Shown here: in pieces, positions 17,719 through 39,699 of the stretch
Numbering within the stretch: position 1 is the stretch's first letter
Layout: each line of letters begins with the position of its first letter
Assembly (NCBI RefSeq): GCF_000315625.1
Contig: NW_005434557.1
Coordinates: 50,938-114,937, forward strand
Source: Guillardia theta CCMP2712
Taxonomy: Eukaryota; Protista; Cryptophyta
Reading direction: 5' to 3'
DNA: 64,000 bases
Program-made: the position numbers and the translations under genes
The notes under the pieces: model-generated
Databases searched by the model: none
What the model saw: the letters and a program-made list of their open reading frames with translations, nothing else
Told to the model about the DNA's origin: nothing

Positions 17719-20700
17719 CTAAAGCCAAGGCTGGCTGACTGAACGTTTACGGCCCCCGGATGGTCTCACAAACATCTGGGGCCAGGGAGCATCTCCTGCC
17801 GCTCTTCCTCCTCCTCCTCCTCCTCCTCTTCCTCCCTCTTCGTCCTGGCTACTCACCCCGGCTGATATCAGCGGCAGCAGCCTTGAGTTGGAGCCTCTGG
17901 TTCTCGGCGCGGAGCTGCTGGAGGTAAATCTCAAGCATCTCCGTCTTCCAGTCGTCCTGCTCCTGCTCGCTGGTCGACGCCGTGTAGATGCTCCTCGACC
18001 AGGCTCGCTGCATCTTGTCCGTGTCCAAGTTGACTTTCGGGTACAACTGGCCGATGACCCGCACGAGGGCGTCGAAGGAGCAGCGCTTCTGGTTCCAGAT
18101 GTCATGGCAGGGCTGGTCGGCGAGCGGAGCATCCAAGGTCCTCTCAATGTAGTTCTTCCTCCTCGTCAGCCTCGCAATCTCTGCTTCGATCTCCGTCATC
18201 TCCTTCCGCAGCTCCACCTCGTTGATCTCCGGGTCAGGGATGTGACCGTCCAGCGCCTGGACGAGACTTCGGTCAGCCCGAGAGCGGCTGAGAAGGAGTA
18301 GGAGCAGGGAGCAGGGAGCAGGGAGCAGGGAGCAGGGAGCAGGGAGCAGGGAGCAGGGAGCAGGGAGTAAGGAGGGAAGATCAAAGGAAGGGAGGAGGAG
18401 ACTTGACCTCTAAAGCATGGAGCAGCATGGTGTTGCTGTATGTGCTCCCCGCGAACAGGCTGTGGCTGATGTCCTGAACCGCCTTGACAACATCCTCATG
18501 CACAGCGTCGGGGGCATCTTTCCCGAGCCTCTCTGCCTGTTAGCAAGACACAAGTCAACATGAGAATGAGGCGAGGGAGAGGGAGAGGACAGCAGGCAGG
18601 AGGAGGCGAGCGGGCTTGAGGTCGTGCAGCCACTTACAGTCTTCTTGCCTTCCTCCTTGGCAGCAGCGTAACCGTCCATGAGGATGGCAACGAACACGTT
18701 CATGAGGACCATGCCCGTGAGAAACATCCAGGAGATGAAGAAGACGTTTGCCATGATGGGATTGATGTAGCCCAAGTTGAAGTTGCCGATGGTTGGGCCC
18801 AGGTCAAAGGCCCCGAAGAGAGACTCCCACATCACCTGCACAGCCTCAGCTGGCGAAGACGAGAGCACGGGCGACAGACAGTTGAAAAAGAGGACGAGGC
18901 AGAAGAAGGAGGGGAGAAGGGTGGGAGGGGGACAGAAAAGCATGCGACATCGTAGAAAGAAGAGTTGAAGGGAGGGAGTGAGGGAACCAGAGATGGGAGA
19001 GGTGAGAAGGAAGAGACGTCTTGGCAAGACAGGACGGAAGACCTGAATAGAGTTGGGGACAGTGGCGAAGTCTCTGCTCTGATTGCCGAAGTTGAGATGT
19101 CCGATGGCAGCATACCCGACCAGCATGACCCCGAAGATGAGGCAGAAGTGATAGAGATGCACCATGGAGGCACTGAGAGTCTTGTTGACGATCTGCAGGC
19201 GGGGCTGAAACTCGTAATACTTGAAGAACCTCAGGGTGCCAATGAGGATGGAAATGAAGTTTACGGAGAGCTGATCGCGGTTGGTGCGGTAGAGCTGCTC
19301 GAAGATGGGGTCGTAGTCGTTGGTGGGGACGCGGACTGGATGGCAGATGATGTTCTTCATGTACCCGATGCGGATGACGATGAACATGAGGTAGCACGTG
19401 TAGTTGACCAGGTCCAGACAGGCCCACTGCGAGCAAGGATGAGACGGGGCAGGGAGAATAGGGGATGGCGATCAGAGCGATCACGGTCACTTACCATGTT
19501 GAAGAATTTGTGGAGGCGACGAAGATAGATGGCAGTCAGGAAGTTGCGGATGTAGGAAGAGATCAAGAAGAAGACCCAGACCATGAAGGCGATCTCGAAG
19601 CCCAGGAGAATGAAGTCCTTCTGCGTCAGGTAGGGCTCCATGTTGATGGAGCCGATGCTTACCGTCGTCCCTCCAGGGAGATTCCGCTGCACTGAAGTGG
19701 CGGACGGGTCGGACGTGATGTACCTGGTTGCCGAAGGTTTCAAGCAAGCAGAGGGGAAGATGAAGGGAGAAGGAGTCAAGAAGAATCATCCAAGGTAGCG
19801 ATCGACAAACAGAACGAAGAAGGAGACAACAAGGACTGGCAAGACAAGGAAGAGAAGACAGTAGCGGAGGAGGCGGAGAGGACTTACGTTCCGAAGTGAG
19901 AGAACTGAAGAGACACCTTGGCGAAGGTGAACATGCCAAAGTTTCCATTGTAGAAGGTGAACTTAAGGTCGATGTGGCGGGTCTTGGAGTCCAACCATCT
20001 TAGCTCCTGCAGCTGCTGGATCTGCTGCAGGTTTGCCTTGATGCCGTCGGCGAGTGACAGCCACGCTCGATATCCCTGGTCCTTGTAGCTGTACTGGAAC
20101 GAGTTGACAACGTTGGAGTACTCTGTCTGGTTCAGCTTCTCTCGATCTCCGAACTTGGAGTTCTCAAGGTCCACGAGGTACTGCTGGTAGTCAGGCGAGC
20201 TCTCGTCGATCTCCATGATCGGCTGGCTGCTCCCACAGACGTCCTTGGTGCCGTTGACTCGCAGGGGAGGGTCGGCAGTGACGTACTTGACGTTGCTGTA
20301 GCATGTGGGGTAGAACAAGGAGTACATGGAGTACTCGCAAGGCTCCAGCTCTCCTCTCTTCTGAATGATGAGCACCCCCCCGATGAGCTTGTTGTAGTTG
20401 TAGATCATCCCCATCTCATCGGTCGTGAAAGGATCGCCGTTGTACCAAGTCCCTCCCAGGATGCTGTTGATGAGACCCCCGTCTGGTTCGGTGCCGTCTG
20501 TGAAGCTCTGTTGCTTGTTGTCGTAAGACTTGAGGAGATAGTCGAAAAAGTCTCCCTGCATCTGAACGGAAGAGAGCGCTTCGTCCTGGGAGCAGCTCAA
20601 GTGAGAGGCAGCAAGACTTCACCCAACATGGCTGTCAACGCACCTGCTGCAAGAGACCGTTTCTGATCGCATCGTCGATCAAGTTTGCGACCTCCACGTC

Positions 20701-27815: not shown

Positions 27816-30404
27816 ATGGCAAAGCGTGGTGAACAGAGCCATGCGTGTGAGCAGGTGAGAGGGGGAGGGAGAGAGAGGAGAGGGAGGGATAAGAGAAAGG
27901 GAGGAGAGGGAGGGACGAGGACGAGGAGATAGGTTCGACGATGGATGAAGGGGGGGGGGGGGGAAGGAGGCAAGCGGGAGAGAAGAGGAGGGAACCGAGC
28001 GATGAATTCACAAATTTTGATACACTTGTTTTGCTCTTCATCAGATGCTCGGGTTTGTCACAGAGGCTTTCAAAGAAGCTTCGAATCTGCAGAAACGAAT
28101 CGAGCAGAGAAGAAGCGAACTCGACAAACACAAGTCTCAGCTCCTCCTGAGGTCGCTCAAGGAGCGGGGAATCAAGATTGAAAAAGAGACTTCTTCTGCC
28201 ATCAAGCCAAGCAACATCGTCAAGCTCAACGTGGGAGGAACGAAGATAGACGTAAAGAGAAGCACCATCACTCGCTTCTCCTCCAAACTCAAGTGGATGC
28301 TGAGGTGAACTCGTCCTCTCCTCTCCTCCAGCTGAGCCTCTACTAGCGGTCGCTGGGATCACATCTACAAGCTCGACAATGAAGGACGGATTTTCCTCGA
28401 CTATGATGCTGGCTGGTTCGACCCTATCATCAACCACCTGGTGTACCGATCCTCCTCCTCTACCCCATCATCCTCCTCCTCACCACCACCACTCCCCTTC
28501 CTCCCCCTCCCCATCCTCCTCCTCCTCATCATCATCATCAGCAGCAGCACCACCACCACCACCATCTGCATCCTTTCCTCCTGCCTTCCTGTTACTCGCG
28601 CTCACATAATGCGTAGCGGGAGCTCACAATGCAGGACCCGACCATCCCCATACGGCAGCCGAAAGCCAGTCATGGCGATCAGTTCGGATTCCGGCAGCTG
28701 CAGAAGCATCTTGGCTTGGAGAAGCTGTTCTCGAGTGAAGGCGAGGTGGAGGCGGGAGTGATGAAGCCTTGGATGCAGGCCGTCTTGGCAGGAACCATCG
28801 TGACGACATTGGAAGCAGACGGCAGAGACTGTGAGTTCCGCCTCCTCCATCGTGGAAGCCGCGATGGGTTCGAATGCTCGAAGGTGCAGAGCAAGAGCGC
28901 AGGTGTGGTCAACAGCATCACCATCGTACGTGACACGGAAGGGAACGTGTTTGGGGCCTTTGTGGACGTGGGGAGAAGCTTTCACGAGCAATACATTGAG
29001 TCCAGCAAGGCGTTTCTGTTCCACTTGTCCAGCAGAGGCTCACAAGACCCGAAGCTCTACAAGGTCTATCCCGTCAAGGCCGACCAGAAGCACACAGCGG
29101 TGCGAGGAGTCCGAGCTTGCTGTGCCGTGCTGGGAGCTGGGCCGGATCTGAGCATATCGAACGCATGCAACGCCAACAACGAGAGCTCTTGCCACCTGGG
29201 CACAACGTACGAGAACTATGGGAGCCCTCACGCTCTCACCAACGGTCGCGTCAACTTCCAGGTGGCTGAGCTGGAAGTCTGGCAAGTCAAGCTGGAGCTG
29301 GTCGGAGCCGAGGGTGTCAAAGACGCGAACCGCCGAGTGCCGACCAAGTCCGCCTCGCTCTTATCGGAGCTGACGCGAAGGGTCAAGGACATCGACAGCT
29401 GCGTGCAGGAGCTGCTGGGGGAGGGGGTGAGACTGCAGCAGGAGGAGGAGAACTTGATCGAGGACGGGAGAGATCTCGACGACGAGATGGAGTACATGGA
29501 GAAGATGGAAGAGAAGCACAAGGCACAGGAGATCATCTTCTTCAACGTCGGCGGGAGGAAGCATTACACCACCAAACAGACTCTGTCGCTCATCAAGGGT
29601 TCCAAGCTCTACATGCAGTACGCGAGTGGTCAAGTGCAGGTGCCAGAGACTGACTTGGATGACGACGGAGACATCTTCCTTGACATCAACCCCTACTGCT
29701 TCGGCAAGATCCTTTCCCAGCTGCGGCTTAGACGCCTGTACGAGGACCTGCCGGACAAGGAGCAGGACGAGATCAACATCGGCATCGTCGTGGACCCCCA
29801 GTACTTGGAGTCGTTCGATCGCATGTTGAACTTCTACCAGGTCGAGCAGTCCGACTTGGCCTGCTTCCGTTCCTCCATCTTGCCAGCTCGAGAGCGAGTA
29901 ACCAGATTGCTCCAGCTGCTCCGACCCCACATGCAGGAGATCCCTTGCCGATACGCCTCCCTCCTCTTCCGCGGCAGCCGCGATGGTTTCACGAGGGGCC
30001 AGCTGCAGACCAAGTGGAACAATACGAGCAACAAGCTGCTGTTGGTCAAGGACTCCAACAACAACATCTTCGGGGGCTTCGTCGACTCGAAGAACAACAA
30101 CGCTTCCTCTAGCAGAGCCTTCCTCTTCAGCCTCGAGCTCACTGCTGACATCCATCAAGACTCTCTCACTGTCTGCAGGCTGATCGGAGCCATTCCCGAC
30201 GGCTGCGCCTTCAACTTTAACGTGGGCGGCTGCTTCGCCTTCGGTAGTAGGCCTGACCTGTTCCTGTCCGAGAACTGCAACCAGAACCAGCAGAGCTCCT
30301 GCAACCTCGGGCAGACGTTCAACGCTCACAACAACCCTCACCTCCTCACCAGTGGCTCTCTCAACTTCACCGTGATGGAGATGGAAGCCTGGGGCCTTCA
30401 CTAG
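27816..30404 (+). CDS. KCTD-type BTB(T1)-TLDc-BTB-TLDc tandem protein
   Basis: BTB1 IVKLNVGGTKIDVKRSTI..SGRWD..LDNEGRIFLDYDAGWFDPIINHL; TLDc1 LLHRGSRDGF..NSITIVRDTEGNVFGAF..AFLFHL..LGAGPDL..FQVAELEVW; BTB2 IFFNVGGRKHYTTKQTL..DDDGDIFLDINPYCFGKILSQLR; TLDc2 LLFRGSRDGF..IFGGF..FGSRPDL..FTVMEMEAW. Start is ATG 27816 (with intron) or 28045. Confidence 0.9.
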
Positions 30405-30889
30405 GAATGAGGCGGAAACAGCCCTAAGGTATTTGAGCTCTACTGGCGTCAGCCCTGCTCTTGTCTGATCCTTGAATGTGACGTCAGTCAGAGAGAGGGT
30501 CATGAACGTTGTCGTTGATAGATCATTCTGAATGCTCCTCTTGCTTGAATTTGATCCTCACAACCATGATCTCATGCCCCCTCCCTCCCCGAGCCATTTT
30601 GTCTCTTCCCCTTGTTTGAATTCTCCGCATTTGTAGTCATTCTTGACTCTATCAGCATGTCTTCAGCTATCGCTACTCTCTCCGACGTGAGCAAAACGAC
30701 TCGACCCGGAAGGATGATGTCTCCTAGTCCGTCATCATCAAGTGAAATCGAGAGAGAGCCAAGGGAATGTCCCGCCCCCCTGACTCGAGTCTGTCTTACA
30801 CGCCCTCCTTCTACTCTCACAAACAGCTTCCGGTAGGTCTTGTTGTACATACACGAGCCCTACCGCTACTTGTGCATGCTCGCCTCCTC

Positions 30890-33800
30890 CTACTGGCATA
30901 GAGTGTTGCGGAAGTTCACGTACTCCCTGTGCAGATGCTTCTTGATCCCATGCATCTCCTCCAGCAGCACCTGCCACCGCCTCCATCATCCTCCTTATCC
31001 TCTCCCGCCCCCCTCANNNNNNNNNNNNNNNNNNNNNNNNNNNNNNNNNNNNNNNNNNNNNNNNNNNNNNNNNNNNNNNNNNNNNNNNNNNNNNNNNNNN
31101 NNNNNNNNNNNNNNNNNNNNNNNNNNNNNNNNNNNNNNNNNNNNNNNNNNNNNNNNNNNNNNNNNNNNNNNNNNNNNNNNNNNNNNNNNNNNNNNNNNNN
31201 NNNNNNNNNNNNNNNNNNNNNNNNNNNNNNNNNNNNNNNNNNNNNNNNNNNNNNNNNNNNNNNNNNNNNNNNNNNNNNNNNNNNNNNNNNNNNNNNNNNN
31301 NNNNNNNNNNNNNNNNNNNNNNNNNNNNNNNCCTGCCCTCCTCTCAGCTCTTCCTGCCCGGTCTCTCGCCTCCCTTCCCTCCTACCTCCACGCACACGCA
31401 CAGGTCCCGGTAGCCCCCGCTCAAGCTCGTGCCGCCAGACGGGTCGTACCTGCCCCACAGGCTCAGCCGCATCCCTTGGCTCGACCCGCTTGACTCCTCT
31501 ACATCCCCTCAGCTCACTCCTCGCCTCGTCTCCCTCCCCCTCGCTCCCCGCTTCCCGCTCCCCGCTCCTGCTCCTCGCTCCTCGCTCGTCTTCTTCTGGT
31601 GCACGTACCGGTTCTTGATGTTGGTGATGCTCATGTAGATCTCCCCGCCTTCCTCTCCCCCGCCCGTCTGTCGAAGGCTCGTCACTTCCTCCTCCTCGCC
31701 GTCTCGGTTCTCTCTGCCCTCCTTACCTCCACGTCCTCCGACATCACCCTCCCTCCTCCAGGCTGGTCCCACGCGCTCACCCCGTGCCCCACCACCGACT
31801 GACCCCGCAAGAAGCTCAACCACGACAGCACGTCGTCGATCGACGACACCACGACAGTACATCGCACCAGGTCGGTCAGGCACGAGGGGTCGCGCCTGTA
31901 CGACCTCACCGTCTTCTGCATCGCTCGCGCGCAAGACTTGACGTTACCATGCTCCACCCGCCCCACCCGGTTCCACCCGGACACCCACAGCTGGAAGGCG
32001 GCGCTGACCTCCTGCGCCTGGAGGAAGAGCTGCTCGAAGTCTCGGCTCGCCTGCCGGATCTTCCCGTTCCTCCTCGAGTATCGCCGGCCCCGCAGGCCGA
32101 GCGTCACCCACAAGTACCGACGCCACGTCCGGGTGTCATCGCCGATCACCTCCTCCAGCTCTTGAGCGATCGCCCGGACTCGCGCGCTGATCTCCTGCAC
32201 TACGTGCGAGCTCTCCTCGACGACGCTGGTCCAAGTGTCCTCGAAGCCTCGCATGGCTGCCTTGAGGTCCCTGAAGGTCCTGGCGTACGCCCGGTGATAC
32301 TCCACCACGATCGCCAGCTCCACCAGCCAGCAACCTACCCCGAGGCACAAGAAGCCGAAGCTTTCAAGGTCTGTTGATATGATCCCAACAAACAGGCAGA
32401 ATGCACCCTGGACAAGAAAGGCAGCCATCCAGAAGTAGTGCTGCACGAAATGCGCCAGGTACATCATGATCATAAGCAATGAAGAAGAAATAATCTTTTG
32501 ACTCGAGTTGCAGAATGGTCCTATCCCCGTCCCCTGAGTCGAGCACTGCACAAAGTCGGCTACCATGCAGGCCACGTTGGCCGTCAGCACCAGATGCCCC
32601 GTTGACAGCAGCAGCCACTTGGCTCGTAACGGTGTGCTCAGCAGCCCCAGCAGCACCCCGCTCAAGAACAACAAGCTCCACGCAAAGCTGATGATCGGAT
32701 CTGCCATGACCGATATCCTCACAGTCTTGGGCTTGACGGGCGTGCCCGAGCTCTTGTCCGGCAGCCAGACCTGGTCGGACATGATCGGGCCCAGCTGCTT
32801 GATCCCGAACACAAGGTACACCAGGCTGAGGAAGACGATGCAGCTTCTCGCCGGCAGCTTCACCAGGGCCGTCTCGAGGGAGTTGGTGGTGCGGAGGGCG
32901 AGGACCCCGTTGACGTCAGCGTCTCGGTACTGCCTGAGCCTGTCGTTGAGAGGGAGGAAGCGCTCGTCCTTCTTGTAGTCCTCCACCAGCTTCTCGAGCG
33001 TCCGGATCGAGCTCTCGTCTGAAGCATTGTATGCTGTGATGTCAAGGCAAGATTCCACTATCTGAATGCAACTTTGAGCCTGCGACAGTGCTCTCGTGAA
33101 CAGAGGAAGTTTGTCCAGGGTCTCGATGCCCCGCAGCGCGAAGTACTCGTTGAACTTGTCATACATCCCCGTCTCCTGCAGTACCTGCAGCACCTCGATC
33201 CCCCGAGGGTTGTGTTTCGAGAACTCCCACAGCTTTCGGTCGATGTGCTCCTTCACCACCCTCACCAGACAGTGTGCTATCAGCTCCCCCGCCTCCCTCG
33301 CGCTTCTCTCGACATCTCCGGTTGAGTCTACGTACATGCCAGCCACTCCCTTGCTCCCCTTCCCTCTCCTTGTCTCCTCCCCCAGCCCGACCTCTGCCCT
33401 CCTCCCCGCAGGCAGCAGCATCGCCACCGCCTCCTGCACCGAGACTCCCAGCAGGTACTCGAGTATCGCCTCTCTGTCCCTCCGGACGCCTCCTGCTTGT
33501 ATCAGCTCGCTCGCCCGCGCGCAGCTGCGTACCGACGGCTTCCTGCTGAGGCTCCCGCACGCGCTGGAGAGGGAGGTGCGTCCCTCGGACTCGTCCCGCA
33601 GGATGGGTAGCACGGCCTTGAGTCTCCCGGCGTCCTTGTTGAGCAGGTAGAGCGCTGCCAGCGCGTGCACGAGGAAGTCACTCTCACGGTCGTGCGCCTC
33701 GTCGATCGCTGCGAGCTCCTCCAGCACGCTGTGTTCCTGACCCCAGGTGATGACGGGCACGAAGACGGAGCAGTTGCACAGGTATCTGGCTCTAGTCACC

Positions 33801-34081
33801 CTTGTCTCGAGGGCAGCCAGGTAGGGCACGCAGTCCATGTCGAGGTAGGTCTTGCCGGGGTAGATCTTGTAGACGTCATTTGACCTTTTCGAGAGAGTCT
33901 CGTGCAGGACGCTGTGGAGGCGATCTTTCAGAAGGGCTGTCTCGTGATGGCGGCTGTCGAATCGCTGGTACTCAGGATGGAGCCTGTAGACAAAGATGTG
34001 CGTGTGATCGCTTTTAGTGTCATCTAGTGACCGGGCTCGTTGATTGTTCATTTCAAAGATCATGAAGGGTGTTGCTTTCAT
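30890..34081 (-). CDS. Copy A: TIR-like + SAM-like + 6TM + RelA/SpoT-like nucleotidyltransferase
   Basis: The 799-aa ORF 31682-34081 plus spliced 3' exons mirror copy B; one exon falls in the gap 31017-31331. Motifs: HIFVYRL..TYLDMDCV..CSVFVPVIT..AVLPIL (TIR-like); VLQETGMYDKFNEYFALRGIETLDKL (SAM-like); six hydrophobic helices; VKSCARAMQK, LTDLVRCTVV, IKNRY..GGYRDL, H..Y. Confidence 0.75.
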
Positions 34082-34607
34082 TCACTTGTTGTTCAGCCCA
34101 GAAACCAGCTCAAGGAACGTTGTGGGCGGACACTACATGACTCTCAAACGCTCAGAGCTACTCACCATCGTGAAGAATGTTGGTGCATGACCTACTCATG
34201 TCGTATCAGACTGTTTCAAGCCGCATGCCCTTGCATCGCGCTATCGTCTGCTACCGATCTTCCAGTTACCTTTTTACTTTTGAGCCTACCCCTCCCCTAC
34301 TCCATTACCCCCCCTTCTCATAGCAAATGAACCCGTCCGAGCTCCCACGTCATCACGCCACAAATGTACCTTTATAACCTTATAGTGATTACCCGAATCG
34401 TTGCGGATTCGAGGCTCCTTCAAAAAACAAAGCCTAGTTATACTGTTACTGGGCTGAGCGGGCCCGGGATGAGGGAGGTTACTGCGTGGCATGACCCGGC
34501 CGCCGCCTCGTTACCACTGAGTTTTCAAGTTTGATCCGATGATCCGAGTCACGCATGTCAGAGTCACCGTCACCGGGCTTTCTGACTCGGGCGCTGTGAT
34601 CCGAAGT

Positions 34608-34805
34608 AGTCTTTGATGTCTTTGATATTTTTGATATCTTTGCCATGTCTTCACAGAGTCAAGTTGATGTCTTTGATGTCTTACATTCACTCAGCGGATG
34701 TCTTTGATGTCCGATCTTTGACTCTGTGATTCAACTTGGCAAGTTGATGTCCGAAGTTTGATGTCTTTCAGTCGGATGTCTTTGATATCTTTGATGTCTT
34801 TGAAC
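34608..34805. repeat. Degenerate 9-bp repeat (TTTGATGTC)n in the divergent spacer
   Basis: CTTTGATGTC/TTTGATATC units are repeated many times with interruptions. Confidence 0.8.
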
Positions 34806-35937
34806 TTAGTATCCGAAGTTTGCCAGTGATGTTACGGAGTACGGGTTTTGATATCCGTTTGATGAGTCAGTACTTTGAGATGTCGGAGTCACCGTGCCAC
34901 TGCGACTCGGCGGGCCTCCGGCAGAGCTCGGAGGCAGCCCGGCACCGGGCACCTGCTACCCTGAGGCTGCCATCTGGCACTGACATGAGTCTCACTGAGG
35001 CCGGGCCGATCTGACGGTCCGATCGGCAGTGAGCCGCTGCCGCAGTGCCACGGACAGTGTCAGGGTCAAGCCCGGCCTCCTCGACTCTCCTGATTGTCCT
35101 CGTACTGCTTTTTAACTTAACTTTGAGTAAAGCCACGGACTGACAGCACTAGCTGGATGTCTTGATGAGTCACGTGTAGTAGATGTTTTATATCTTCATC
35201 AGCGACCGTTCGGAGTTCAGAAGCCAACCAAGGGAAAGAGTTTTAGATGGGGTTGGGGTGGGTTAAAACTTGATCAGGATGGGTGAAAATTCACTTAGAC
35301 GATATGGTGGGAGGAGACAGGGGGGTGGGACAATTGAGTGTATTTTTAAAAATATCAAAAGACGTGTTTTGGAGTGAGAATTGATGTAGGTGCAACTCGC
35401 GAAGAGTGTGTAGGTATTTCCAGTCATTCAAGGGGGTAGTCTGGCAGAGGGGGGGTGCTCCTCCTCACAAGGCGGAAAAATGCTCAGTGCGGGGGAACGA
35501 AAGGAGGAAAAGAAAGAGAGAAGGAAGTGAAGGAGAGCGAAGAAAGAGACAGCAGAAGGAGAGAGAACAAACAATCATATCTGCAGTGACTGACAGGCAA
35601 TGGATGGTTGGGAGCTATGCCGGAAGATTGAAATGTTGAATCGAGCGATTCAATCGAAAGCAAACTTTGCCTATCGGCAACACGGGTGAAAGAGATTGAG
35701 CGTGTGAGCGAAAAAGTGCACGAGATTTAGGTTGAACTCGACTCAGAAACTATCATGCAATCCTAGCATCAATTTCGATGGACTGACGAAATGACGATTT
35801 GCTCAAGAGTGTATTTGAAAGGTTTTCAGAACTGATTGTGTAAAATTTGCAGATTCGCATATGCTGCCGGCTGATATGTATCGGGAACGTGGTGATTTTG
35901 TAAAATGGTATCCATGACACGTTAGAAACAGCAGATC

Positions 35938-38900
35938 ATGCACAAGAGCAGGTCCGAGAGTAAGGAAAATGTACTTTTACCTACGCTTGCATCAAACCGA
36001 GCAAAGCGCCCAGTTTTGCACAAGCAACAAACCGGGCTGCAGCCTGAAAGCAACTTACCACTGGCTGCTGCCAAGGACAACCTTCACTTCTTCGTCTACA
36101 GGCTCCATCCTCAGTCCGCCAGCAGCGGACGTGAAGAAGAGACCGAGGCAAACACTGGTCATGACCAGCAGCTTTCAAGGCGCCTCCATCGCATCCTGCA
36201 CGAGATCCTCTCCTCTGAAACTCAGAGCTTCTACAAGATCTACCCCGGCAAGACCTACCTCGACATGGACTGCGTGCCCTACCTGGCTGCCCTCGAGACA
36301 AGGGTGACCAGAGCCAGATACCTGTGCAACTGCTCCGTCTTCGTGCCCGTCATCACCTGGGGTCAGGAACACAGCGTGCTGGAGGAGCTCGCAGCGATCG
36401 ACGAGGCGCACGACCGTGAGAGTGACTTCCTCGTGCACGCGCTGGCAGCGCTCTACCTGCTCAACAAGGACGCCGGGAGACTCAAGGCCGTGCTACCCAT
36501 CCTGCGGGACGAGTCCGAGGGACGCACCTCCCTCTCCAGCGCGTGCGGGAGCCTCAGCAGGAAGCCGTCGGTACGCAGCTGCGCGCGGGCGAGCGAGCTG
36601 ATACAAGCAGGAGGCGTCCGGAGGGACAGAGAGGCGATACTCGAGTACCTGCTGGGAGTCTCGGTGCAGGAGGCGGTGGCGATGCTGCTGCCTGCGGGGA
36701 GGAGGGCAGAGGTCGGGCTGGGGGAGGAGACAAGGAGAGGGAAGGGGAGCAAGGGAGTGGCTGGCATGTACGTAGACTCAACCGGAGATGTCGAGAGAAG
36801 CGCGAGGGAGGCGGGGGAGCTGATAGCACACTGTCTGGTGAGGGTGGTGAAGGAGCACATCGACCGAAAGCTGTGGGAGTTCTCGAAACACAACCCTCGG
36901 GGGATCGAGGTGCTGCAGGTACTGCAGGAGACGGGGATGTATGACAAGTTCAACGAGTACTTCGCGCTGCGGGGCATCGAGACCCTGGACAAACTTCCTC
37001 TGTTCACGAGAGCACTGTCGCAGGCTCAAAGTTGCATTCAGATAGTGGAATCTTGCCTTGACATCACAGCATACAATGCTTCAGACGAGAGCTCGATCCG
37101 GACGCTCGAGAAGCTGGTGGAGGACTACAAGAAGGACGAGCGCTTCCTCCCTCTCAACGACAGGCTCAGGCAGTACCGAGACGCTGACGTCAACGGGGTC
37201 CTCGCCCTCCGCACCACCAACTCCCTCGAGACGGCCCTGGTGAAGCTGCCGGCGAGAAGCTGCATCGTCTTCCTCAGCCTGGTGTACCTTGTGTTCGGGA
37301 TCAAGCAGCTGGGCCCGATCATGTCCGACCAGGTCTGGCTGCCGGACAAGAGCTCGGGCACGCCCGTCAAGCCCAAGACTGTGAGGATATCGGTCATGGC
37401 AGATCCGATCATCAGCTTTGCGTGGAGCTTGTTGTTCTTGAGCGGGGTGCTGCTGGGGCTGCTGAGCACACCGTTACGAGCCAAGTGGCTGCTGCTGTCA
37501 ACGGGGCATCTGGTGCTGACGGCCAACGTGGCCTGCATGGTAGCCGACTTTGTGCAGTGCTCGACTCAGGGGACGGGGATAGGAGCAGAGTGTAACGGTT
37601 TCTCGGATATAATCACTGTGAGCTTTCTGGCTATCATGATGTACCTGGCGCATTTCGTGCAGCACTACTTCTGGATGGCTGCCTTCCTCGCTCAAGGGGC
37701 TTACTGCTTCTACTCGGCTCTAGCTCTTGACAATCAGTTCAGGTACGTGATGGTCTGCCTCGGGGTAGGTTGCTGGCTGGTGGAGCTGGCGATCGCGGTG
37801 GAGTATCACCGGGCGTACGCCAGGACCTTCAGGGACCTCAAGGCAGCCATGCGAGGCTTCGAGGACACTTGGACCAGCGTCGTCGAGGAGAGCTCGCACG
37901 TAGTGCAGGAGATTAGCGCGCGAGTCGGGCGATCGCTCAAGAGCTGGAGGAGGTGATCGGCGATGACACCCGGACGTGGCGTCGGTACTTGTGGGTGACG
38001 CTCGGCCTGCGGGGCCGGCGATACTCGAGGAGGAACGGGAAGATCCGGCAGGCGAGCCGAGACTTCGAGCAGCTCTTCCTCCAGGCGCAGGAGGTCAGCG
38101 CCGCCTTCCAGCTGTGGGTGTCCGGGTGGAACCGGGTGGGGCGGGTGGAGCATGGTAACGTCAAGTCTTGCGCACGAGCGATGCAGAAGACGGTGAGGTC
38201 GTACAGGCGCGACCCCTCGTGCCTGACCGACCTGGTGCGATGTACTGTGGTGGTGTCGTCGATCGACGACGTGCTGTCGTGGTTGAGCTTCTTGCGGGGT
38301 CAGTCGGTGGTGGGGCACGGGGTGAGCGCGTGGGACCAGCCTGGAGGAGGGAGGGTGATGTCGGAGGACGTGGAGGTAAGGAGGGCAGAGAGAACCGAGA
38401 CGGCGAGGAGGAGGAAGTGACGAGCCTTCGACAGACGGGCGGGGGAGAGGAAGGCGGGGAGATCTACATGAGCATCACCAACATCAAGAACCGGTACGTG
38501 CACCAGAAGAAGACGAGCGAGGAGCGAGGAGCAGGAGCGGGGAGCGGGGAGCGAGGAGCGAGGGGGAGGGAGACGAGGCGGGGAGCGAGCTGAGGGGATG
38601 TAGAGGAGTCAAGCGGGTCGAGCCAAGGGATGCGGCTGAGCCTGTGGGGCAGGTACGACCCGTCTGGCGGCACGAGCTTGAGCGGGGGCTACCGGGACCT
38701 GTGCGTGTGCGTGGAGGTAGGAGGGAAGGGAGGCGAGAGACCGGGCAGGAAGAGCTGAGAGGAGGGCAGGTGGGATGGACGATAGACGAGTCGAGCCAGT
38801 GCTGCACGTTCGTACCGGTGAAGGAGTGGGGGAGGACAGCAGGGCTGCGGAAGCACATCTGCGAGATACAGGTGAGGAGAGGAGAGGAGAGGAGAGGAGA

Positions 38901-39183
38901 GGAGAGGAGAGGAGAGGAGAGGAGAGGAGAGGAGAGGAGAGGAGTGGAGTGGAGTGGAGAGGAGTGGAGTGGAGTGGAGTGGAGAGGAGAGGAGTGGAGA
39001 GGAGTGGAGTGGAGAGGAGAGGAGAGGAGAGGAGAGGAGAGGAGAGGAGAGGAGGAGCAAAGAGGAGGGGGGAGAGGAGTAGGATGATGGAGGCGGTGGC
39101 AGGTGCTGCTGGAGGAGATGCATGGGATCAAGAAGCATCTGCACAGGGAGTACGTGAACTTCCGCAACACTCTATGCCAGTAG
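35938..39183 (+). CDS. Copy B: TIR-like + SAM-like + 6TM + RelA/SpoT-like nucleotidyltransferase (1-bp frameshift at ~37926)
   Basis: Exons 35938-38375, 38435-38493, 38653-38716, 38770-38871 and 39103-39183 (all GT-AG) give ..VKSCARAMQKTVRSYRRDPSCLTDLVRCTVVV..IKNRYDPSGGTSLSGGYRDLCVCVEVGW..KHICEIQVLLEEMHGIKKHLHREYVNFRNTLCQ*. Confidence 0.75.
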
Positions 39184-39699
39184 GAGGAGGCGAGCATGCA
39201 CAAGTAGCGGTAGGGCTCGTGTATGTACAACAAGACCTACCGGAAGCTGTTTGTGAGAGTAGAAGGAGGGCGTGTAAGACAGACTCGAGTCAGGGGGGCG
39301 GGACATTCCCTTGGCTCTCTTTCAGTTTCACCCGGGTCCATCGCTTCTCCTCCTTGCTCAGGATGCTCAGGAACTTGTTGGGAGGGTCTTCATGCACGCG
39401 CACCCGCCTGCCCTCCACCTGAAGGAGTCGGTCAGCTCCTCTCGCGTCTCAGGCTGCTCGCACGGGGTGGTCGAAGGCGATGGAGCACGCCCAGAGGAAC
39501 AGGGCGCCAGCCTCGTCTGAGTGCGAGTTGGTCCGGTACCTGCCATGGCAGAGACTCACAAGGAGCCTCGTCGCGTTCCTCACTCGCTCACTTCCTATCC
39601 CCGAGGATTGGCGTCCCCATGCCCGCCATGTGCTTTCTGAGCTGAAGGCAAGAGACGTCACGAGGCGAAGGCGGAGGGGAGTAGAACCTGATGCATTCG

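Follow-up and report, generated by a model that had tools for sequence, protein, structure and literature searches.

Analysis of a 64,000-nt window of the Guillardia theta CCMP2712 genome (contig NW_005434557.1, referred to here as C117, positions 50938–114937) identified a pair of head-to-head genes at window positions 30890–39183, each predicted to encode a membrane protein with a TIR-like domain, a SAM-like segment, six hydrophobic segments and a C-terminal domain (C-domain) of the RelA/SpoT homolog (RSH) synthetase fold. Profile comparisons and structural models indicated that the C-domain is a divergent, apparently active member of that fold and that its nearest characterized relative in sequence is Tas1, not the toxSAS/CapRel enzymes that had been named as analogs in the original prediction, which was made from the sequence alone. 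The same prediction had treated the region as a single gene, and it proved to be an inverted duplication of two genes with four arm pairs that are 96–100% complementary. The features of the pair are listed below in window coordinates, with those of the minus copy in parentheses.

35938–39183, plus strand: plus copy (open reading frame and exon model; introns 1–3 joined in RNA contigs)
30890–34081, minus strand: minus copy, start codon at 34081 (inverted-repeat arms, exons and splice dinucleotides checked)
34082–35937, no strand: spacer between both start codons, 1.86 kb of unique sequence
36085–36846, plus strand (33257–34006, residues 26–275): TIR-like domain (model and structural alignment, hhalign)
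36874–37077, plus strand (33026–33229, residues 285–352): SAM-like segment, containing KLWEFSKHNPRGIEVLQVLQETGMYDKFNEYFALRGIETLDKL (profile against PDB)
37255–37806, plus strand (32297–32848): six hydrophobic segments (hydropathy)
37597–37755, plus strand (32348–32506): divergent patch, covering transmembrane segments TM4 and TM5 and the loop before TM6
37807–38090, plus strand (32012–32296): helical juxtamembrane linker (alignment; the first long helix in the C-domain model corresponds to its end)
38091–39183, plus strand (30890–32011): putative Tas1-like pyrophosphokinase domain of the RelA/SpoT fold, interrupted by four introns

The C-terminal domain

RSH synthetases carry the motifs RxKxxxSxxxK, D..R, GYxSxH, EIQIRT and H..YK in that order. 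The spliced, five-exon plus copy contained, in order, VKSCARAMQK, LTDLVRCTVV, IKNRY, GGYRDL, CEIQV and HREY, as had been read from the sequence originally. Because the reading frame of the minus copy cannot be verified across an assembly gap, all statements about a complete C-domain refer to the gap-free plus copy.

Sequence profiles linked the domain to a single characterized protein. An hmmsearch of PDB sequences with a profile of three cryptophyte C-domains had Tas1 (6ox6) as its sole match (E 2e-5), and with a profile of 54 sequences this match improved to E 2.4e-10, with no other RSH chain listed. The C-terminal GHKYYEDWR of Tas1 aligned with GH..Y..(W/F)R of the C-domain family. Ten residues were invariant across the 54 relatives (K38, R42, K46, R49, Y51, D60, R63, R142, E181 and Q183, numbered along P0004:655–870) and four were nearly so (G140, H178, H204 and R211). 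By analogy with characterized RSH synthetases, these residues would represent the ATP-binding basic motif, the Mg-binding Asp, the GY(R/K) acceptor motif, the catalytic E-x-Q and the H..Y motif.

The domain that we modeled was residues 655–870 of the paralog P0004, the annotated G. theta protein GUITHDRAFT_111645, which matches another contig at 98% and whose C-domain is 76–85% identical to the window exons. The AlphaFold2 (AF2) model had a predicted local distance difference test (pLDDT) value of 85.4, and all 50 best rows of a Foldseek search against the PDB were RSH synthetases, which together with the Tas1 profile match bore out the RelA/SpoT fold that had been proposed. Structural alignment gave Z 14.0 for SAS1 (root-mean-square deviation (rmsd) 2.6 Å, 145 residues), 11–13 for SAS2/RelP, 10.8 for Tas1, 10.7 for CapRel and 7.6–10.2 for the long Rel, SpoT and RelA enzymes. 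The 25 RSH entries spanned Z 14.0 to 7.6, and Pol X and TdT followed at 7.5 or below. The identity to Tas1, 27% over 142 aligned residues, was the highest of the solved chains. The cryptophyte subfamily has two insertions, a low-pLDDT loop (residues 93–115) and a hairpin (residues 156–175). A two-copy complex prediction for the linker and C-domain (P0004:590–870) had a score of 0.09 and a mark of 0.32, and gave no verdict either way.

TIR, SAM and membrane regions

The N-terminal strings quoted in the original prediction (FVYRL, YLDMDCV, SVFVPVIT and AVLPIL) were present in both long open reading frames (ORFs). Window residues 1–405 were aligned with 21 paralogs and relatives and then modeled with AF2 (pLDDT 70.9, core 85–94). 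In an exhaustive structural comparison with this model the top ten chains were all TIR domains, including those of RPS4 (Z 11.2), RPP1 (10.5), a CRISPR-associated TIR (9.9), AtTIR (9.8) and SARM1 (9.6); Foldseek likewise had plant TIRs on top with a probability of ~1, but at E 6e-3. The window N-domain had no match to Pfam TIR or TIR_2 at E≤1, and the N-domain family profile had no significant TIR match among PDB sequences (L6 TIR, E 0.59). Relatives with the same C-domain do match TIR_2 (P0054 at 34.2 bits with a cutoff of 28, L019 at E 9e-4), and hhalign joined the window subfamily to these TIR_2-type relatives with a probability of 94.5% and E 7.6e-8. Judged by the model and these alignments, the window N-domain is a TIR by fold and descent; the suggested TIR_2-type identity held for the fold and through the relatives, and not as a direct Pfam match.

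The sole PDB sequence matches of the TIR_2-type relatives were SARM1 TIR chains (E ~0.06). In these relatives the Glu of ..DNVLLE.. aligned with the Glu of the SARM1 HKE motif, which we take to be the catalytic E642. The window TIR has ..DFLVHAL.. at this position, with Val or His at the place of the Glu depending on the aligner, and Glu in neither register. Because the catalytic Glu is missing, the window TIR is probably a scaffold and not an NADase. Catalytic TIRs do exist in G. theta, since a TIR of this organism that is active and depletes NAD is reported in a 2026 preprint (10.64898/2026.04.20.719644); the window TIR is without the Glu.

The SAM-like segment that had been noticed behind the TIR gave marginal but consistent matches. 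Its profile matched the SAM domain of EphB4 best among PDB sequences (E 2.1e-3), 13 of the 15 listed rows were SAM domains, and Pfam SAM_1 and SAM_2 matched the aligned place in relatives at sub-threshold level only. The model has helices in this region at residues 292–304, 307–317, 322–337, 346–352 and 356–368, with pLDDT values of 34–37 at residues 331–354.

Hydropathy identified six hydrophobic segments, as predicted (residues 412–432, 460–483, 488–510, 529–547, 549–568 and 575–595 of the minus-copy ORF), and the same number in P0004, P0018 and P0025. Since the count is even, the TIR/SAM and RSH parts would lie on the same side of the membrane, presumably in the cytosol. An HD domain is absent, and no signal or plastid-targeting leader was evident by eye at the N-terminus of either copy, in line with what had been noted at the outset. 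Pfam provided no known family for the membrane block, and the ESM Atlas gave no usable named match. As most relatives, dinoflagellate transcripts included, carry three to six hydrophobic segments immediately ahead of the C-domain, the membrane block and RSH domain look like a conserved core to which the TIR and SAM domains were added as a head.

Two features of the membrane block are recorded here as side observations. The loop between TM3 and TM4 (window 37560–37600, ..QCSTQGTGIGxxC..) has two Cys residues and a GTGIG motif that are invariant in the closest subfamily only (seven proteins) and absent from more distant relatives; its likeness to channel filter motifs is superficial. The last TM segments and linker had weak Pfam matches to SLATT_6, a two-TM effector module of bacterial nucleotide-signaling defense systems, in P0006 (residues 677–746, E 0.014) and P0007 (residues 483–571, E 0.075). 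These matches were too weak to prove a SLATT_6 identity. Weak matches to Pfam Psu, Peptidase_M13_N, TMEM120 and DUF948 were judged to be chance or unproven.

Gene structure, transcription and divergence of the pair

The exons of both copies and two blemishes of the reference are as follows.

35938–38375, 38435–38493, 38653–38716, 38770–38871 and 39103–39183 (with stop), plus strand: exons 1–5 of the plus copy (product ~914 aa, counting an extra C)
31727–34081 (exon 1), 31609–31667 (exon 2), 31386–31449 (exon 3) and 30890–30970 (exon 5), minus strand: exons of the minus copy, with exon 4 inside the gap
37925..37926, plus strand: 1-base deletion in the reference, one C missing relative to the minus copy, with a false stop at 37956
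31017–31331, no strand: assembly gap, minus copy only, in place of exon 4 from base 2 onward and of most of intron 4

For the plus copy all GT/AG combinations were scored against the C-terminus of P0004 and the best in-frame model was kept; its four introns are all GT-AG and all in frame, as the original prediction had proposed. Public sequencing runs were then aligned to window 35900–38871. Introns 1–3 (38376–38434, 38494–38652 and 38717–38769) were precisely absent from contigs of runs X1 and X3, which come from two studies, while a contig of the DNA-like run X12 was unspliced and continuous through all three. In addition, the second exon junction was crossed by one raw RNA-seq read of run X19. 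Because contigs of two studies skip exactly these introns and the DNA-like contig does not, introns 1–3 are real and the gene is transcribed; the expected joining of the exons in transcripts was thereby seen. A GGAGA/GGAGT microsatellite makes up nearly all of intron 4 (38872–39102). For the junction of this intron, support comes from the open frame and from P0006, P0008, P0009 and P0031, relatives whose sequence CE(I/V)QV|(L/I)L(E/H) is continuous across the predicted joint.

The plus copy itself is unbroken. The extra C after 37925 was present in contigs of each of the three contig runs (X1, X3 and X12), which indicates that the frameshift is a reference error (or a rare variant), and a 2580-nt RNA contig of X1 with the extra C spanned the plus-specific 5' end and the divergent patch with no other difference. 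Exon 1 of the minus copy sits in an intact 799-aa ORF (31682–34081) that runs on into intron 1. Minus-copy exons 2, 3 and 5 match those of the plus copy letter for letter, and none of the visible splice dinucleotides is disrupted; the product would be ~886 aa, assuming an exon 4 of 102 nt as in the plus copy. The gap is bounded on the right by the first base of exon 4 and on the left by the final 46 nt of intron 4. These flanks are collinear with 38770 and 39064 of the plus copy, so that the hidden interval is 322 nt (with an estimated run of N) compared with 293 nt there. The gap therefore hides the CEIQ-bearing exon 4 and the microsatellite of the minus copy, and the mirror position of the intron 4 microsatellite is the place of the assembly break.

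Overall the inverted repeat spans window 30742–39331, and its longest perfect arm is 1367 nt at 100%. The two copies differ in their first ~85 residues and in the TM4–TM5 patch, and share everything else. The spacer (34082–35937) presumably holds the divergent promoters of both copies, and an RNA contig of X1 extends 427 nt upstream of 35900 into it. Repeat units of the GATGTCTTTGAT type were observed at ~34590–34800, between the divergent genes, and these GATGTCTTTGAT-like repeats may be shared regulatory sequence.

In the patch, 68 of 159 nt differ, next to 1367 nt that are 100% identical, and synonymous sites are saturated (proportion of synonymous differences (pS) 0.75, of non-synonymous differences (pN) 0.34). 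Recent conversion of the patch from another paralog was considered and rejected, as searches of the genome, which covered 87.1 Mb on 669 contigs, found no donor above 89% for either variant. Both types of patch are found again in Hanusia phi and among other paralogs of Guillardia, and both variants were present in DNA contigs (joint 37685/37756). The ENA sequence P0001, which is 90% identical, combines a minus-type N-terminus with a plus-type patch, a mosaic that suggests exchange between the copies in related strains. The simplest reading of the sequences is that gene conversion has homogenized an old pair, sparing the places where the two copies differ in function. A divergent promoter common to the two copies may drive them, and they may function as a differentiated pair.

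Adjoining the minus copy is an intron-less ORF of 591 aa (window 28629–30404, plus strand) with two TLDc stretches flanking a BTB_2 domain (Pfam TLD E 1e-34, BTB_2 E 1.9e-5). A further ORF at 18410–19387 (minus strand) matched a polycystin-type cation channel (E 2.7e-17) and Ion_trans (E 3.2e-10). No immunity gene of the Tis1/Aph1 type was found beside the pair, the neighboring ORFs being the TLDc-BTB protein and unrelated genes.

The family, its known relatives and its possible role

A paralog count, which had been suggested as a check, showed the pair to belong to a large family. The N-terminal half matched 20 places in the same genome, on ~14–17 loci; at least 14 loci have the full architecture, and the C-domain had 75 exon-level matches on at least 30 loci. 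Inverted C-domain pairs are located on C117 (the window pair), C4 (1071–1079 kb, 98.2% identity), C100 (16–25 kb) and C206 (46–57 kb), a convergent pair on C49 (430–457 kb, 97.3%), and tandem arrays on C37, C13 and C62. By contrast with the canonical plant and algal RSH enzymes of the plastid (p)ppGpp system (HD_4 plus RelA_SpoT), with which they have the superfamily fold in common, the window genes are without an HD domain or evident targeting leader and are missed by the Pfam model. As only two canonical HD_4 plus RelA_SpoT genes (on C47 and C24) and no stand-alone HD_4 hydrolase were seen in the genome, the family is distinct from the plastid (p)ppGpp system, with no RSH-type hydrolase on hand to reverse its product.

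The C-domain is also widespread outside Guillardia. Compared with 1.84 billion representative sequences, its profile had 624 matching proteins at E≤0.001, 177 of them at E≤1e-10. In other protists, with clusters in ciliates, diatoms and dinoflagellates, the domain carries no annotation. The same domain is fused elsewhere to TIR_2, SAM and F5/8 type C domains and to a protein kinase and HEPN_DZIP3 (relatives P0054 and P0055), and structure-based ESM Atlas clusters added fusions to TPR and ankyrin repeats. By language-model features a phage (Uroviricota) cluster with partial RelA_SpoT annotation was a near neighbor.

Comparison with known systems indicated that the domains are known ones, in what would be a new architecture and a new host. 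Tas1 (also Apk1; 6ox6), a (p)ppApp-synthesizing type VI secretion system toxin of Pseudomonas aeruginosa, has in common with the C-domain a K-S-x-x-R-A-x-Q-K...D-L-x-R-x-T block and the C-terminal GH..Y..WR block. It is, however, a secreted bacterial toxin with a PAAR domain and an immunity protein, Tis1, and a survey reported its homologs from bacterial phyla only, with the MuF-fused Apk2 subclade tied to temperate phages (PMC10083569). The domain described here is instead the predicted cytosolic tail of a eukaryotic six-pass TIR-SAM protein, with two insertions and four introns, and no Pfam match to a PAAR or MuF delivery domain was found in the protein or its relatives. The small alarmone synthetases (SASs) SAS1/RelQ and SAS2/RelP (5ded, 6fgk and 6ex0) are the best folds (Z 14.0–11.2, rmsd 2.6–3.8 Å over ~145–154 residues) and have the same motif order, but these bacterial enzymes are soluble homotetramers and produce (p)ppGpp, their identity is 13–20%, and Pfam RelA_SpoT misses the window protein. 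With the toxic SAS enzymes CapRel, FaRel and FaRel2 the proteins have the RSH fold in common, and the logic would match, an alarmone-synthetase fold serving as a growth-arresting defense effector; those enzymes are bacterial, have a fused or separate antitoxin, act in some cases on tRNA, and gave no sequence-level match.

Two eukaryotic systems resemble the window proteins in part. SARM1/TIR-1, a metabolic executioner of animals, combines TIR and SAM in one protein, and the concept of an oligomerizing scaffold that switches on a nucleotide-consuming enzyme would be common to both. In SARM1, however, the TIR itself is the NADase, with its catalytic Glu, whereas the window TIR has no such Glu and it is the RSH domain that is the candidate enzyme; relative to SARM1, the window protein has a reversed domain order, no ARM domain and a polytopic membrane block. 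Fungal NOD-like receptors (NLRs) with a predicted N-terminal RelA_SpoT effector domain (Dyrka et al. 2014, PMC4986451) are, like the window protein, a eukaryotic immune-type family with an RSH domain as the predicted effector, but they are soluble, Pfam RelA_SpoT-positive and built from NACHT or NB-ARC with WD40, TPR or ANK repeats, in contrast to TIR, SAM and six TM segments. No Pfam match to NACHT or NB-ARC was found in the window ORFs or their homologs. Our literature searches found no paper on a TIR-SAM-TM-RSH protein, in agreement with the earlier view that the architecture was undescribed, whereas RelA_SpoT effectors as such had already been predicted in these fungal NLRs.

We tentatively favor, at slightly short of an even chance, the view that the proteins are conflict- or immune-type effectors that are triggered by oligomerization and, by analogy with Tas1, pyrophosphorylate adenine nucleotides. 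The C-domains would be activated by a trigger that is sensed either at the membrane block or by assembly of TIR and SAM, and would then transfer a pyrophosphate group of ATP onto the 3'-OH of adenine nucleotides (Tas1 chemistry, PMC10083569), yielding pApp, ppApp and pppApp. This synthesis would either drain ATP, so that the infected cell stops growing or dies, or make an alarm nucleotide. The family behaves as conflict genes do, given its many loci, tandem arrays, near-identical inverted pairs and fusions to TIR_2, F5/8C, kinase plus HEPN, TPR and Ank domains. Going further, we speculate that there may be an unrecognized branch of protist immunity or cell death in which a membrane receptor directly switches on a Tas1-like adenosine 3'-pyrophosphokinase, (p)ppApp synthesis and ATP collapse serve as a self-inflicted defense signal, and the head-to-head pairs are sensor and partner, much like paired plant TIR-NLRs; we regard this larger proposal as rather unlikely.

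Several observations weigh against an effector of this kind. An immune role would be argued from domain company and family dynamics alone, expression was low (18 reads in ~6% of a raw RNA run), and the patch gave no sign of diversifying selection, pN (0.34) being below pS (0.75). Pfam RelA_SpoT (PF04607) had no match at E≤1 to the window ORFs or to full-length spliced homologs, so the RelA/SpoT assignment stood by fold and by the Tas1 profile and did not reach the Pfam threshold. The same Pfam searches, on raw ORFs and spliced homologs alike, gave no TIR or SAM match either. A genome-wide six-frame scan with this Pfam model detected the two canonical loci only and left the window genes undetected. 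Among the relatives, 4 of 52 matched it at E≤0.001 (best E 1.8e-5), P0125 scored 20.6 bits where the gathering threshold is 27, and one Guillardia paralog is already named "RelA/SpoT domain-containing protein" in UniRef. In structure, SAS1/RelQ, a maker of (p)ppGpp, tops Tas1 (Z 14.0 versus 10.8), and CapRel, a tRNA pyrophosphokinase, ties with it.

These structural results bear on two other activities. A membrane-bound SAS that makes (p)ppGpp or another reversible messenger in ordinary stress signaling, with TIR and SAM as mere assembly modules, would agree with the best fold matches, which are the (p)ppGpp synthetases SAS1, SAS2 and RelP (Z 11–14), and with the record of divergent stand-alone synthetases in fungi, Dictyostelium and diatoms (PMC3153485); most protist relatives, having a multi-TM block before the domain and no TIR, would also fit a sensor-enzyme. 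We nevertheless consider it unlikely, based on Tas1 being the sole PDB sequence match, on there being no stand-alone RSH-type hydrolase in the genome to reset a messenger, and on a copy number, a pattern of duplication (inverted as well as tandem) and a set of fusion partners (TIR, HEPN, kinase, TPR and Ank) that are of the conflict-system type. More doubtful still is pyrophosphorylation of a macromolecule, such as the tRNA 3' CCA modified by CapRel and FaRel2, which would shut down translation and not act on nucleotide pools. The identity to CapRel is 14% compared with 27% to Tas1, and no profile match to the CapRel or FaRel2 sequences was found in the PDB at E≤10, even though CapRel (7ztb and 9erv) aligned like Tas1 (Z 10.6–10.7), FaRel and FaRel2 also appeared in the match lists and the two cryptophyte insertions (residues 93–115 and 156–175) could shape a larger substrate site. 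That there is no working enzyme gene at all, the locus being a pseudogene pair, a palindrome assembly artifact or a carrier of a dead scaffold domain, is highly improbable and largely refuted. What had made this conceivable was that the reference has the plus copy frameshifted and the minus copy interrupted by a gap at exon 4, and that the N-terminal TIR no longer has its catalytic residue; the frameshift, however, is missing from all contig runs, spliced transcripts occur in two studies, both patch variants are present in DNA contigs, the long ORFs are intact, and none of the RSH catalytic-type residues varies among 54 diverse relatives.

The RSH biology of eukaryotes is essentially plastid (p)ppGpp and Mesh1, and (p)ppApp synthesis by Tas1-type enzymes is, to our knowledge, known only from bacterial and phage warfare. 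TIR and SAM are hallmark assembly domains of animal and plant cell-death signaling. The pair belongs to a transcribed, lineage-expanded eukaryotic family that joins an apparently active Tas1-like domain to TIR and SAM on the presumed cytosolic face of a membrane protein. If the C-domain is active, it would represent a nucleotide chemistry new to the conflict systems of eukaryotes and one more link from prokaryotes to eukaryotes in the evolution of immunity.

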